This document shows, piece by piece, positions 27,845 to 62,489 of a stretch of DNA of 64,000 nucleotides; within the stretch, counting starts at the first letter, position 1, and the number at the start of each line of letters is the position of its first letter. Under the pieces are notes generated by a model. That model was given only the letters and a program-made list of their open reading frames with translations, did not search any database and had not been told where the DNA came from. The DNA is from Fimbriosthenelais zetlandica (taxonomy: Eukaryota). A program made the translations under genes and the position numbers. The stretch covers positions 31,124,001-31,188,000 of the forward strand of contig OZ365115.1 in assembly GCA_977030845.1 (NCBI GenBank), in the 5' to 3' direction.

Positions 27845-27904
27845 CGTGAACTACGTCGTCAGATAGCGGCGCTGTTTCTTCTGTGGTGGCCACCGTTTGT
27901 GACA
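27845..27904 (-). CDS. 60-nt symmetric internal exon (x-SQTVATTEETAPLSDDVVH)
   Basis: Acceptor gatcctctttttAG, donor CACG|GTGAGT, phase 1 to 1, open frame, GC-richer than its flanks. Confidence 0.8.
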
Positions 27905-31530: not shown

Positions 31531-34099
31531 TTGTTTCCTCTGGTACATGCTGCCCTTCCTCCTCTTCCACATTAGGGCTGGGATGCTCAATAAAGGTATC
31601 CACCTCTTCATCACTCTCCTTCTCTTCCTGCTCCTCTTCCTCTACCACAGCCTCCTGCTGTTTCTCCTCCACTTGCTCCTCTTCTTTGGTAGGCTCCGCG
31701 AAATCCACAAGTGTTTGCTCCTGCGAACTCTGGTCTGCTAAGGGTGTGGGTTCGATTCCGTCCATGGTAGAACCCTGGGGCTCAGCTGGTTCTTCCTGCT
31801 GTTCTTCTTCCTCCTGGGACACATCAATAAGCCCTGGAGATGATTCATTTTGCACTGGCTGGACCTCTTCTGCTTTAACCCTTTCATCACCATCCTCTTT
31901 CTCATCCACTTCCTCTGTGGCATTCTCCTCTAGAGCACCCAGATTCACTAGGTCATTAGTTTCTTGCATAGAAAGGTTAGTGACAGCTTCTTTCTCCTCC
32001 TCTGGTTCCGCTGGGGGTTCGACCTTGTTATGTAATCCGTCATCTTGCTCCTCCATCTCTTGGCTTTCTTCCTCTGGTTGTCCACTTATCACTTGTTGGT
32101 CTTCTTCGTCCTCTTCTGGTTTCTCAGCCATCTCAATCAAATATGGGCCAGGACCAGTACAAGGCTCTTTGGGCAATTGCCCTTGTTCTTCCTCCACCAT
32201 CTCCTCTTCTCCTTCATTCAATCCCTTCTCATCAGACACATCCTTATCAGCAGCATCTATGTCCTTTTCAAGGCTAATCAGTTCAGCAGTATTGTTTTCA
32301 AGTGTTGAAGAAGAATCTATGGCAATGGAAGGAGGCAGAGCTGCATCCACCTCACCACTGGCTGCCCCGGCGTCATCTACATTCTGCTGGTGAGCTATCA
32401 TATCTCCATCACTTGGACCCACACCACCATGATCAGCTGTATCTATGTCTTTCTCCTCTTCAGCCTCCTCAGTCTTACCTGTCGTGGCAGACATATCCAT
32501 GCTGGAGGTATCCGCAGAGAAGGCCTCACTCGCATTCGTGCAGCAATTGTCGGTCTCTTGCGGAGCAGCGGCTGATGCAGTTTCGCCGGTCTCCGACGAA
32601 TCTTGTCCGTGGCATGCCGTATCCACTACTTCCACATCACTTAACTTCTCCGCGTCCCTCTTTTCTTCCTCACTGTTCGATCTCTCCATCCTTGTACTGA
32701 GATAATCCACAAAGTTATCAGATAATCCCTGGTTCAATCCAGTGCTGTTATCCGCGGGGTTATTGGGACTGGCAGGGCTGGGTGAAGGGGACCTTCTACC
32801 TACGAGCTCTAAGGTCTCTGTACTACTGGAGGACCTCTTGGCAATGAATGAATCCTCCTGCAGCTCTTCCTCCACCTGCTCCTCTTCCTTCTGCTCTTCC
32901 TCAGTGACTGATGAGTGTAGTGGGGGAGAGAGTGGGTTGTGGCAGTGAGTTGTGGTGATGTCTGGACCTGGGGAAGGACTGTGAGGGGAGGATATATGGG
33001 AAGTGTTGCTAGTAAAACCCGGTGCAGTGTCACACTCCACTAACACACTCTCCTGCTCTGCTGTGGTGGTGGTCGTGGCCACAGTTAAGGATGTGAGCTG
33101 GTGGTGAGGGAGGGAAAAGCTGCTGCTATACAAGCCCTCCTTCTCCACTACCTCCTCCTGCTGCTGAGGCTGCTGCAACTGCTTCCCCTGGTCCTCCATC
33201 TGCCCCTCCTCCTCCTCCTCCCCCTCCTCCCCATCTAGTACCACACATGCATTGCTGCTCTGGCCCTCTTTCTCCACAATTGCAATACTAGAGCAATGCC
33301 CTACAAACTCATTCTCTCGAGCACCACCATTGCAGTCAATGGAAGTGGTGGTGCCAGCCAAAGTGGTGCTGGTGGTGGGAGTCTGGTCAGGGCTTGTTTT
33401 CCAACCAGACTGCTGGCCATCCTCGGCTGAATTGATGTCCTCAGTGCGTCCATTCAGACCAATGCTATTCAATTCAGATTGAGTATCCCCAGACTCTCTA
33501 CATCCCAGATCCTCATCCCTTACCGTGACAGGCACGCCTTCCCCTCTCACACCACCATCCCTGTCCATTTCCTCAGTATCTATTCCATTCTCCCCATCCC
33601 TATCTTTTGAGTTATGTGATATATGTTTCTCTGTCCCTGTATCCTTGTCCTCATCGGGGTCGATGTCATCACTACAAAGTGAATCGCGGATATTTTCACA
33701 ATTTCTCAAATCCTCCTCCCCCTCAGAAACCTCCATGTCCTCCTCCTCTTCATCCCCTGTTTGAAATTTCCTCCCGTTTTTTCTTTCATTCTCGATGTTT
33801 TCTTCACCGGTCACTCTTTCTTCACAAACTCTTGAAGCGGAGGAGCCAGGATCACCTTGGCTCATGTGATTGTTCCTACAACTATTGTCCTCATCCAGTG
33901 AATCCCTCTCAGGATCAGAAAGCACCTCCTCTTCTCCTACCCCTTCTTCCCCGTTGGCATCTCTGAGCATGATAAATCCATTGTATTTGTTATCCAGATC
34001 ATTGTGAGCTCCGTTTCTTCTCAGATCCACCCACTCTTCCTCCTCTCCCCCTGAGGAGCTATAACGTCCATTGTTGGCACAGTAACCATTTGAAGCCAT
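31531..34099 (-). CDS. Giant exon encoding ~856 aa of acidic (E/D-rich) low-complexity, probably disordered sequence; alternative first exon, or internal cassette if the AG acceptor giving an exon start at 34113 is used
   Basis: 899-aa ORF in the track with ATG in ATAATGG context. Coding-like composition ends at the phase-1 donor CAA|GTGAGG (31531/31530). A weaker phase-1 acceptor tgtAG would give a symmetric 2583-nt exon. Confidence 0.85.
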
Positions 34100-35411
34100 T
34101 ATTCCATGTGTATCTACAATGCACCTTAATATATAGGTCCTTTAGGTAGAAATAGCCTTTGTGAAGCGCTGATGACTTTGTCGGCTTGTCGCAATGATTC
34201 ACACAGGTGTAAACTAGTGCAGTGAGTTGGGAGTCTGGTCGTGGGACAGTCAGGGGTGGAATGACTCGCCACGCTAGATGACGATTGGGTTTTGTCTGGC
34301 AGGGAGCAAACACTAATCAACCAACCAGGTCCCATGCTTTAATTCACCCCCTTTAGCCCCCACCCCTTCACACCCACCCCCCATTACCCCCACTCTTTCC
34401 TCAATGAACGCACCACCCCACCCACTGGGTCTCCACTCCCCTCCCACCTGTCCACCACACACCTAATACTCACAATGGGATTTCATTCTAAAATCCATGC
34501 AAGCTCCGAGCCAAACCATTTGGCAGTTAAATATCTAAACGTGTCAGTTTAACCTGAGGCAAGCCCCCCTGCCACATGTTCATATAGGTAGAGTATAATA
34601 TAAATCCCAGTCAAATTAAATCAGATTTAATGAGATTGAAGCATGCATTCGTTCCACCGACCTACTAATCCACCTAGCCACCCAGTCATGGCCTTCTATA
34701 ATCTAACCGACATCACAGCCAGACTGAAGAAAAACCCGGGATAATGAAGAATCCCACCAGGTCACATATTTGCTAAGCCACATCACCGCCCCTCCCAACC
34801 CTCCACGCCTTCCATTATTCAATTGACTGGATAGAACTTGAGATTAACAAGGACAAAAGTGCAATGAGATCATAGCACCGACCCCCCCTCCCCCGTCAAC
34901 CCAACCCCTTATAATCTATTATTTGTAATGAAAGGGTCACAATGTAAGCCTATGATTATACCCCAACCCCCGTCTGAGCCAGATACATCTTAGGGCATGG
35001 GGGTAGGCAAAGGGGCTGGGGATAAGAAAACCTAAGAAGATTCTGCGAAGGTTTACTTTAGATACACCCCAACCCACGCCATTGGGAAAGAACCCAAATT
35101 AAAATTGAACTCATGACCTTAATGATTTAATAATAATTAGTGCTTAAAGCTTAAGCATCACAAATCCCTAAATACCAGACCCCCCTCCCCCCCCCCCTTC
35201 AACCCACAACTTCTACATCTGCTAGTTTTCAGGCCAGACATTAACGCTGCACCCTACCACAAAGTATTCAGCGCTGACTCATTGCTCAAACCCGTCACTT
35301 GTATGAGCTCATCAGCCTCTGCCTTCAGCCTCAGCTTGTTATTGTCATCATTTCAAGGCCACGTGCACGCTGAAAGGTGCCGGCATATAGCCTCCAGCAC
35401 TGAGGCTGCAT

Positions 35412-35470
35412 GAGAGATGGGGAAGAGAGATGGGGAAGAGAGATGGGGAAGAGATGGGGAAGAGGGGGAA
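35412..35470 (+). repeat. 13-bp tandem repeat GAGAGATGGGGAA, three full copies plus two shortened copies
   Basis: Directly visible. Confidence 0.9.
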
Positions 35471-36107
35471 GTACCATTACGTAGAGGCGATATGTAATTA
35501 TTCGTAATTGCCTGGTATCAAGTTCATAAAAAATACCCTACCGACCCTAGTCACGCCAAAATAAGAGACCCATCAGTAGACTCCCATCCACCCAAAAACG
35601 TACATTTTCCAAACATGGTTGAATGGAAAGAAGGCCAGGAGCCTACCCTATAGTTAGGGCCTATAGAAATGCTGATCGATTTCTACCCCTGAAGGGCAGA
35701 GGGTCAGGTCATTCATGGGTTAGGATTCAAGGAAGCAATGCTTCCTCTTCCAATGGAGGACCAATGCAGGAAGCAATGATGCAGATTTTTTTTCTTCCAG
35801 CCATTTTTACCAAGATGCATTGAAGGCTAGGGCATAGATTATAGTACCTACGACACTGTCTGCATGGTCAACAGGCAGTGGGCTATGATACAGTAATAAT
35901 TCATGAGCACTAGAGCTTAGCACCACTGACCATCTGCGTTCACCTCTATAATATAACGGTCAGTCTAGAGATACACTTTAATCTTGTCCTCAGTTTATCT
36001 ACTGTTATACAGGATATACAATATACCTCATTTTTCTCAGTTTTTGTTCAGAAATAACTATATATAACAAGGCCTCATAATAAATGTTGTAAAAAGGTCG
36101 GACTTAC

Positions 36108-36190
36108 CACACCTAGGTTATCAAATTATCCATTACGGACTCGCAGAATAACTTACCTGCAAAAGAAAATGGGAAGATCATCATTAGTAA
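36108..36190 (-). other. Recursive splice site (ratchet point) at 36157/36156 with a 49-nt cryptic RS-exon (36156-36108)
   Basis: Minus strand reads TACTAAT (36189-36183) gatgatcttcccattttcttttg CAG|GTAAGT, with a second donor GTG|GTAAGT 49 nt downstream. Confidence 0.7.
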
Positions 36191-39100
36191 TGTACAGATT
36201 GAAATAAACAAGAGATGATTAAATAATAATTATCTACAATTAATGGTAGACTACGGTAAAACAATACAATTGGCAGAAATAATTGTTTCATTTGTCGTTT
36301 GGTTCCATAAATAATTGTAATTATTTTAAAGAATAATAGTCGCTGGAAATGACTAAGATATATAGCATTCATCTATTACAAAGACCTGTGACAGTGTGCA
36401 AGGGCTGCTGTTGGGGGTATATGGGAGAGAGTGTTCTGGGGGCAGCTGCCTTATTTGCTGATCATTTCTAGGAACATTAGCTGAACATAACCAAAATAGA
36501 TGGCTAGAGTGGCTCTACTAGGAAACGTTCGTTATTATAAAAACACCCATGAGTACCAAGACATACTACATGATTTATTTAGCAGAATTGTGGCCATATG
36601 AGCTACATTTGTGTTAACCTATATGTACAGTGTACATGAGCAAAATTCCTTATGTCTATGCTACATTCATTATAACATTATCCAGATAGTTATTCCACAG
36701 AACATATGGCCTAAGAGACACTGACAAATTCGGCATTCAATTATAAATCCAGAGACGCAAGCCTGTAACTTCAAGCCATAGATTCTGTGATTCAATTTAG
36801 ATATGCTGTCAGAATTGACATCAGTAACGTTCCCATTATTTTCTCTGCCCCCTCACATCACTCACCCCCTCCCACCCATCCCTCCATCACCGGTATTTGA
36901 CTCCTCCATGTCTACTCCCTCTCTCAAGCTCCAGTCTCCGTCCATTTTTTCTTCTATTACATTATGTATATATCAGCAAACACTAAGACAACACTGCTGG
37001 CGCCAAGACTTTTGATACTAGTACAACAGGGAAGCCCGATTGTCATACTGCCTTTCCTTTACTGTAGACTACTTTAACCCATGGCTCTCTCTCCATCTAA
37101 TCCCGCCTGTCTCTATATACTCCACTCACTCTTTTATTGATGGCTTCTGCCATAATACACTTCGTGCTCGAGCATGAGACATACTTTTCAAGTGCCCTAT
37201 CTAGTTTTCTGCTATGCAAACAGTTTTAAAAGTACACTGCAGACAACGGAAGGACATGTTTGATACCAAAAAAGTCATCTTGCAAAAGCCCGAGATATCA
37301 AATATCAAATAGTATTTAGGAACTGAGGTATCAGGCTTCACTGCAGAGTCACTGAGAGCTTGCATGACAATAGTATACTAGACAATGTTGTCCGATTCAA
37401 GAGAGGTTTGTCTGGCTAAGTTGCAAGTTGCATGGATCTTTGCCCAATTTGTGGCTAAATGTTAATACATACGAGATAAATATGTGTCAGCTATGGCAAT
37501 GTTATTACCACTATATGAACACAATGTATATCAAGTATATTATGTATATCAAGTTTAATAAATCTGTCTAGAGGTAAAGAAAAATAAACCCTACATAAAG
37601 CCCAATGATATAATGAGATTATGAGAGAAGCTGAGGCTGAATGTACAGGTAAATGATTTTATATTACGAAGTGAAAACCCCAAGCTGGGATGTGAAACAT
37701 AAAGCAATAGCCCTGCTGGTTATTACAGGTGCAGTATCTATTACAGATAGCTTCTGTTCTATCTTGGGGAAGACCCACGCTGAGATGACGAGAGTAAATA
37801 TCATAAACTTATAACAGCTCACCACGGGAAGCTGTGGGTAATATTAACACTAGATATACTGATGTGGCATAACAAGCCATCAGGCAAATTGATGTGGCAC
37901 ATCTGAAACCATCACCTACAACCATTATCTGATATGAAAGTGGTAGGACATCATATGTAATCTATATATTGAATATGAATTATTATCAATATTCCACAAT
38001 ACATAGAAAAACATTGGACCAAAGAAAATATATTTAATACATAATTATACCTATGTGTTAGATTCGGTTACTTTGCCTAATATTCATATTGGTTACAAAT
38101 GGATGGGAGGCTAACACTAGAACTGGCACCACTCACACCATCACTACCAGCATCACTCCATGACAAAGAGTGGTGCTTAGAATGCCTGGCAGGATAGGGA
38201 CTTGTACAACACTGCCTTTTTCAATAGGCAGTCTGCATACAAATCCTCCAAGGGTTGAGAATAGATGTCTCTGCTCAAGCTGCTCCGAAGTGAATCATTC
38301 ATATTCAAGAGACGAATAGAATTTTTAATTTATTAACAAGGTTTCCTTGAATTCTAGGCGTATAGTATAATATTCACTCCGCTGTTAAATCACCAGTGAT
38401 TGATAGAAGCGATCAATTAAATTACACTATGTTCAGGGAGTCTACCTCCATGCATATTATAGAGAACTTTCTTGAAAATATCTCACCCATACCACAAATG
38501 CATCGCTTGATTCGCAATTTCGCACCCATCATTCATCCACGGCCCAATACTTCATTCATTAAGAGTTAGTTTACTGAACCTATTACTATGACTGGGTGTT
38601 TGTAAATGACCAAATTTCTTCACAGCCTAAAGCCATCAGTTGTAAAATACCTATTTCAGAGCACTATAGCTATTCAAAGTAAATTACACAAAAGGTTTTC
38701 TACAAGCATTGTTCAGTTAGAACTTTAAAAACTTTAAGAGCTCAACCTTGCCTTAAAAGAATATAGCTATGAGGAGAATACTGTTGGTTTTTCTGTTATG
38801 CTCCCTTGAGAGGTCCTGCCAAATTGGTCATACAAGCGTAAGATGACTCGTGCCACCGAATGTAACATTCTACATGGAATATCTTATTTCTGAGGATTGC
38901 CTTTTTCTGTTAAATATGTTGAGGACCGGAAAGGACAAAAACCTCTAACAAGCTTACAAAAGGCTATATGGTAAAGATCGGTAATGTAAAATCAGGTCAC
39001 TAACTTGTAAACATAAGAAATCCCTATAGTTTCTTGAGGCACGAAATAGGGATGGACGATAGACAAATATGTTCTAGCATCTGCAGCGAAAGCTTTGGCT

Positions 39101-59047: not shown

Positions 59048-59114
59048 CATGCATTTTCTTTTTCTGCAATAACTTCTGGGTCAATCGAGGGAAACAGGAC
59101 ATCAATATCCCCAT
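59048..59114 (-). CDS. Alternative first coding exon, MGILMSCFPRLTQKLLQKKKMH, for a LIM-less and probably lipid-anchored isoform
   Basis: ATG in ATAATGG context with an in-frame stop upstream. 22 codons plus 1 nt, then strong donor ATG|GTGAGT. Phase 1 matches all downstream acceptors. The sequence has G2/S6/C7 plus a basic cluster. Confidence 0.7.
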
Positions 59115-60750: not shown

Positions 60751-60825
60751 CTGCTCTCTCTACTGGTACTTCCTTCTGCCACTGACGGCTGTGCTTCTCC
60801 TTGCCGAATCCCTCATCATAGTTTC
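60751..60825 (-). CDS. LIMA1-like: Post-LIM exon (G-NYDEGFGKEKHSRQWQKEVPVERA)
   Basis: Acceptor gacttcccatAG, donor CAG|GTACGT, 75 nt, phase 1 to 1. Produces KGNYDEGFG...H...W, the conserved extension after the LIM domain in LIMA1/LIMD2/XIRP2. Confidence 0.95.
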
Positions 60826-62364: not shown

Positions 62365-62489
62365 CTCAGGATCCGCTTGCAATGGGTACACTTGAAACAC
62401 ATCTTGTGATAGATGTTTTTGTCGGCGATCATTTTTTCCATCTCGTAGACACGCTTGTCACAGAGGGCACAACGGTTATCCCCAGCTCC
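62365..62489 (-). CDS. LIMA1-like: LIM-domain exon A (GAGDNRCALCDKRVYEMEKMIADKNIYHKMCFKCTHCKRIL-S) of a LIMA1/EPLIN/LIMD2/XIRP-family gene; the upstream exon lies outside the window
   Basis: Hand translation. Acceptor gttgttttcAG, donor GAG|GTACCA, 125 nt, phase 0 to 2. Contains C-x2-C-x17-H-x2-C-x2-C-x2-C, the first part of a LIM double zinc finger. Not in the ORF track. Confidence 0.95.

Follow-up and report, generated by a model that had tools for sequence, protein, structure and literature searches.

A candidate recursive splice site with a cryptic 49-nt exon in the long post-LIM intron of an EPLIN-like gene, probably from an annelid

Recursive splicing has been shown experimentally in flies and vertebrates. 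A 64,000-nt stretch of contig OZ365115.1 (hereafter the window) carries on its minus strand an acceptor fused to a perfect GTAAGT donor, with a second GTAAGT donor 49 nt downstream. The locus raises the question of whether this arrangement represents a ratchet point (an intronic recursive splice site) whose RS-exon is a cryptic unit of 49 nt, an ordinary short exon, or a chance cluster of splice-like motifs, and whether the DNA around it is the intron of a single gene. We consider it rather probable that the site is a ratchet point in the long intron that follows the LIM exons; this is the best available interpretation and a prediction from sequence. The features on which the argument draws are collected in Table 1.

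Table 1 Features at and around the candidate ratchet point (window coordinates; a slash marks a splice junction)
Feature	Position	Strand	Details
First LIM-domain exon (core of match)	62367..62480	-	Pfam LIM E=9.5e-8; tblastn and blastp matches to Owenia, Tubulanus and mollusc proteins
Upstream exon, LIM-domain tail (GNYDEGFGKEKH...)	60751..60825	-	Ends ...GCAG, phase 1; native donor CAG/GTACGT
Candidate alternative first coding exon (MGILMSCFPRLTQKLLQKKKMH)	59048..59114	-	Donor ATG/GTGAGT; sequence present
Branch-point motif TACTAAT	36183..36189	-	Branch A 36184, 27 nt upstream of acceptor G 36157
Polypyrimidine tract CTTCCCATTTTCTTTT	36161..36176	-	15/16 Y
Candidate ratchet point CAG/GTAAGT	36151..36159	-	Acceptor AG at 36158-36157, directly followed by donor GT at 36156-36155
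Predicted 49-nt cryptic RS-exon	36108..36156	-	Stops in all 3 frames; length not a multiple of 3
RS-exon donor GTG/GTAAGT	36102..36110	-	7/9 to consensus; U1 duplex -9.1 kcal/mol; GTAAGT starts at 36107
Candidate giant acidic exon, 2,583 nt	31531..34113	-	Phase 1-1; weak acceptor tgtag/AT between 34114 and 34113; weak donor CAA/GTGAGG between 31531 and 31530
Candidate next small exon, as proposed earlier	27845..27904	-	Phase 1-1; ctctttttag/TG, donor ACG/GTGAGT; splice signals and frame only

Anatomy of the junction

Read directly, the minus strand from 36190 to 36100 is ttactaatgatgatcttcccattttcttttgcag/GTAAGTTATTCTGCGAGTCCGTAATGGATAATTTGATAACCTAGGTGTG/GTAAGTcc. The original prediction had named a branch point, a pyrimidine tract and CAG/GTAAGT here, all of which are present, and had placed a second donor, GTG/GTAAGT, 49 nt downstream, which is exact. 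The acceptor-donor junction lies between 36157 and 36156, GTAAGT occupies 36156-36151, and the gap from branch point to acceptor (36184-36157) is free of AG. The 49-nt unit, which had been said to carry a stop when entered in phase 1, indeed reads GKLFCESVMDNLIT followed by a stop; inspection by hand showed that the remaining two frames stop as well and that the unit contains a six-codon ATG...TAG mini-ORF.

The branch-point motif and the tract are scarce on the minus strand. TACTAAY occurs only 12 times across the 64 kb, and tracts with at least 15 pyrimidines make up just 0.45% of 16-nt windows. The ratchet core with its tract, CTTCCCATTTTCTTTTGCAG/GTAAGT, has one occurrence in the window, and YYYYYNCAGGTAAGT likewise has a single occurrence with both strands counted, where dinucleotide-preserving shuffles predict 0.02. 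GTAAGT itself is depleted on the minus strand (6 seen against 9-21 expected), and two of the six copies belong to the RS-exon unit. The junction had moreover been described as the sole perfect AG/GTAAGT of the window, and this held: AGGTAAGT was found once with both strands counted (128 kb of strand), and a relaxed AG/GT scan of the window returned no site comparable to it.

An origin of the site from a repeat or transposon was considered and dropped, as the stretch at 34.1-38 kb has no second copy within the window. A known structured RNA at the site was likewise dropped, since no Rfam match was obtained.

Host gene and intron

The host gene lies on the minus strand and is probably an EPLIN-like LIM/actin-binding gene of an invertebrate, probably an annelid. 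Gene identity and strand follow from the first LIM-domain exon. The Pfam LIM match spans 62513-62325, and the domain goes on at ~61185-61093 and then in exon 60825-60751. Repeat-rich exons that match a family widespread among lophotrochozoans lie far downstream on the same strand (8004-7327, 6869-6780, ~6300-5455, and 1966-1268).

At 65% over 43 residues, the LIM domain of the window resembles the Owenia type most strongly, and it is closest to the Owenia/P0118 layout, in which one protein carries LIM, then a DKVE...NI[KR].RF motif (DKVED...NIK.RF), and then the repeats. Annotated proteins of Owenia (P0036, annelid) and Tubulanus (P0051, nemertean) likewise place LIM before the motif and repeats. 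In mollusc proteins (Haliotis, Mercenaria, Gigantopelta, Magallana, and Liolophura) the repeats come first and LIM is C-terminal. A mite protein (P0146) has the order LIM-repeats-LIM. The domain orders were compared among P0036, P0051, P0118, P0146, P0020, P0026, P0033, P0035, and P0038, and the window has the Owenia order. Because the LIM exons at 62.5-60.75 kb and the repeat exons at 8-1.3 kb share a strand and follow this order, the interval from 60750 downwards is likely to be an intron of one gene, and we hold this with good confidence. The site would then belong to the sense strand of a long intron, a placement made by homology only.

Within this interval, the giant exon, the exon at 27904, and the exon at 59114 are candidates proposed from reading frame and splice signals. 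The exon at 59114-59048 ends in phase 1 like exon 60751 and could thus join the same downstream exons; it is a candidate membrane-anchor first exon. If donor 60750 is left unused, the frame stops 11 codons on at TAA (...ERAGTWLHLLGFLHI and stop; 60750-60715, minus strand). A short isoform ending just past LIM would result, resembling mollusc C-ends.

The giant exon lies in an open frame of 913 codons (34141-31403, minus strand) whose product is very acidic and of low complexity. The RS-exon donor precedes it by 1,994 nt. Its acceptor is the only one compatible with phase-1 upstream exons, and its donor has a U1 duplex of -6.6 kcal/mol. An ATG in good context (aataATGG) stands at 34099, 14 nt inside the acceptor, and is preceded by an in-frame stop. 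The exon had no Pfam match, and protein searches with the whole exon, its less acidic middle, and its first 270 residues returned no homologues. The frame may be lineage-specific, or may represent a nested or alternative-start unit. Between the RS-exon unit and the giant exon, the minus strand at 34300-35470 has G-rich runs (GGGGTGGGG type) and, at 35412-35464, a tandem repeat with a 13-nt unit in 4.2 copies. The GC content is 0.47-0.50 here, whereas the intron on either side has ~0.38.

Sequences from relatives covered other parts of the locus. Two 2.9-kb Logan contigs of the only close relative, L001 (ERR14368249) and L003 (ERR14368248), are confined to the region of the exon at 6.3-5.4 kb; around it, exons are ~85% identical to those of the window and introns are largely diverged. 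An exact 22-mer scan of metagenome contigs gave no match. The Capitella orthologue (L002) is a compact gene, and the orthologous loci of Capitella and Tubulanus are organised too differently from the window for a comparison of the site. Occurrences of AGGTAAGT in Tubulanus (L007) were examined as counterparts and dropped, as one is an ordinary exon donor and the other an AG/GTAAGT ~110 nt before an exon. The latter, in Tubulanus polymorphus (L007:19585-19616, plus strand), reads ...aatttcctgcatag/GTAAGTTATT and is itself an acceptor fused to a donor, ~110 nt upstream of an exon of the LIM part. Both this junction and the window site start with GTAAGTTATT, which is probably a coincidence.

Donor competition and the predicted splicing route

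Whether a cryptic exon of this kind is kept or removed should depend on the donor that the first splice rebuilds. Joining exon 60751 to 36156 creates CAG/GTAAGT, which matches the consensus at 9/9 positions and has a U1 duplex of -13.5 kcal/mol, compared with 7/9 and -9.1 kcal/mol for the RS-exon donor, so that skipping of the RS-exon is predicted. It should be noted that donor strength here is U1 pairing energy only, not the output of a trained splice-site model. On the same scale, the native donor of exon 60751 reaches -10.4 kcal/mol.

The proposed route is as follows. The 49-nt unit would be recognised by exon definition, through its strong branch point, tract and CAG acceptor, and its downstream GTAAGT donor. 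Exon 60751, ending in GCAG, would be spliced to 36156, removing 24.6 kb. The perfect donor formed by this join would beat the weaker GTG/GTAAGT and would be spliced in turn to the next acceptor, which is either 34113, at the giant exon (2.0 kb), or 27904, at the small exon (8.2 kb). With the regenerated donor used in this second reaction, the 49 nt would be absent from the mRNA. Use of the RS-exon donor instead would add these 49 nt to the mRNA, and with them stops in all three frames.

The original prediction of a recursive site is thus partly supported. All of its sequence features stand, including an acceptor fused to a donor and a ~50-nt out-of-frame, stop-bearing RS-exon with a downstream donor, and the intron context is upheld by homology. 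The segment split and the adjoining giant exon fit less well. A division into ~24.6 and ~8.2 kb had been proposed, and this remains valid if the next exon is that at 27904; however, because the giant exon lies so close downstream, the segments become 24.6 and 2.0 kb when it is used, which are not the even pieces typical of flies. The lopsided placement, and an intron shorter than many that are recursively spliced, count against a ratchet point.

A more elaborate possibility is that the site acts as a promoter-coupled switch. Joining exon 59048 to 36156 gives ATG/GTAAGT with a U1 duplex of -9.6 kcal/mol, approximately equal to that of the RS-exon donor, and pairing energies alone suggest that inclusion of the stop-bearing exon is then possible. 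Transcripts carrying the LIM exons would discard the 49 nt, and those starting at 59114-59048 would often keep them. The first step would also place a perfect donor 2 kb ahead of the giant 2.6-kb exon, and since both the acceptor and the donor of that exon are weak, it could be recursive splicing that allows the exon to be included. We regard this switch as speculative and improbable.

Known systems and alternative readings

The ratchet reading gains from comparison with well-studied cases. Intronic ratchet points of Drosophila are tandem acceptor-donor sites of strong consensus with a cryptic RS-exon of variable length (~50 nt) that is closed by a downstream donor; the ratchet donor usually beats the RS-exon donor, so that the cryptic exon is removed, and a weakened ratchet donor leads to full inclusion (PMC8605326). 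Cases with RS-exons include Ubx, kuz, and Bx (Hatton 1998, Burnette 2005, Duff 2015, and Joseph 2018, as summarised in PMC8605326). The window site shares with them the (Y)nNCAG/GTAAGT junction in a long sense-strand intron, the out-of-frame, stop-bearing cryptic exon of ~50 nt closed by a second donor, and a regenerated donor stronger than that of the RS-exon, from which complete skipping is predicted. However, its host belongs to the lophotrochozoans (it is probably an annelid) and not to the insects, the site is single, the next feature downstream is a giant exon with weak definition, and the site is known from sequence alone. Fly recursive sites also tend to cut introns into ~9-15 kb pieces, which is a tendency and not a strict requirement (Pai 2018, PMC6110457), whereas the window site gives one segment of 24.6 kb and another of 2.0 or 8.2 kb.

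In vertebrates, where RS-exons carry stops, the same donor competition has been proposed to act as a binary switch (Sibley 2015, as described in PMC5126111), and RS-exons repressed by the EJC are known (PMC6224609). As in that switch, inclusion of the window unit would be a poison event owing to its premature stops, and the outcome should hinge on the donor rebuilt by the upstream exon, CAG for the LIM exon and ATG for the candidate first exon. However, the vertebrate introns exceed 100 kb and belong to brain genes, whereas the window intron is ~27-33 kb, and the dependence on the upstream exon is here a prediction from U1 pairing energies only. A full-text literature search for recursive splicing together with mollusc or annelid returned incidental mentions only and no dedicated paper.

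Three other explanations have to be weighed. The motifs could be a functionless chance or decayed cluster that the spliceosome never uses, or uses only as noise. The motif had been sought deliberately across many windows, and the core octamer is not rare in itself, because bare AGGTAAGT is expected 0.5-1.2 times per strand by Markov estimation (analytic expectations of order 0-3, combined below with empirical rates from the minus strand). The full composite of CAG, a 15/16 tract, TACTAAT at -27, an AG-free gap, and GTAAGT at +49 is another matter. The core CAGGTAAGT has a Markov expectation of 0.1-0.24 per 64-kb strand, the empirical probability of a GTAAGT 30-100 nt downstream is 0.0065 (0.65%) on the minus strand, and the product of core, tract (0.0045), and downstream GTAAGT is ~3-7e-6 per 64-kb strand even with the branch-point motif left uncounted, or well under 0.01 over the ~700 windows of this genome. 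The site is thus far beyond chance even after allowing for that number of windows, and two GTAAGT copies 49 nt apart stand on a strand that is depleted of them; we find a chance origin very hard to credit. It is about as doubtful that the LIM exons close a separate upstream gene, leaving the site intergenic or within intron 1 of another gene starting downstream of 60.7 kb. The stop 11 codons past an unused donor 60750, giving a C-end like those of mollusc proteins with C-terminal LIM, would suit such a division, as would the Capitella annotation, which separates the LIM part from the repeat part. However, in the Owenia/P0118 type, LIM, motif, and repeats belong to one protein, and the same order on the same strand in the window makes the two-gene model less likely; exon 59114-59048, if real, would in any case still place the site in a ~23-kb intron.

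The more serious alternative, which we consider possible albeit unlikely, is that the 49 nt form an ordinary expressed exon, either a 5'-UTR exon of a LIM-less isoform from an internal promoter or a regulated poison cassette exon, its GTAAGT start being incidental or only transcripts from the upstream promoter hopping over the unit. In the leader-exon version, a first exon ending, for example, at GGG/GTGAGT (36865) would be spliced to the unit and on to the giant exon, where the ATG at 34099 would start translation. The giant exon's own ATG, behind its in-frame stop, means that the unit just 2 kb upstream could be an ordinary leader exon, the candidate donor at 36865 is strong (U1 duplex -11.2 kcal/mol), and RS-exons that are expressed have precedents in both flies and mammals (PMC8605326, PMC6224609). 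The promoter and first exon of such an isoform are putative, however, and the unit itself contains stops as well as an upstream ATG. Poison cassette and 5'-UTR leader exons do resemble the unit in being short, closed in each reading frame, not divisible by three in length, and flanked by strong sites on both sides, but they have no reason to start with a perfect GTAAGT. As this hexamer has a frequency of ~1e-4 per position on the minus strand, an unrelated exon would begin with it only rarely (~1 in 10,000), and the perfect start is the feature that would mark the unit as recursive. Transcripts that splice a LIM exon into the unit would regenerate the 9/9 donor, so that recursive splicing would remain available to them. 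The ratchet and ordinary-exon readings are not mutually exclusive.

Recursive splicing is a known mechanism, and the window site on its own would be one further predicted example. Its special points are that it adjoins a weakly defined giant exon and that its predicted outcome depends on which upstream exon is joined; if the switch described above were true, a lophotrochozoan would possess a recursive-splicing switch coupled to promoter choice. The site, in what is probably an annelid gene, shows every sequence-testable property of fly-type ratchet points that have a cryptic RS-exon, donor competition included. Candidate sites of this kind suggest that the ratchet mechanism and the architecture of the ~50-nt cryptic exon may be common to protostomes rather than an insect speciality.
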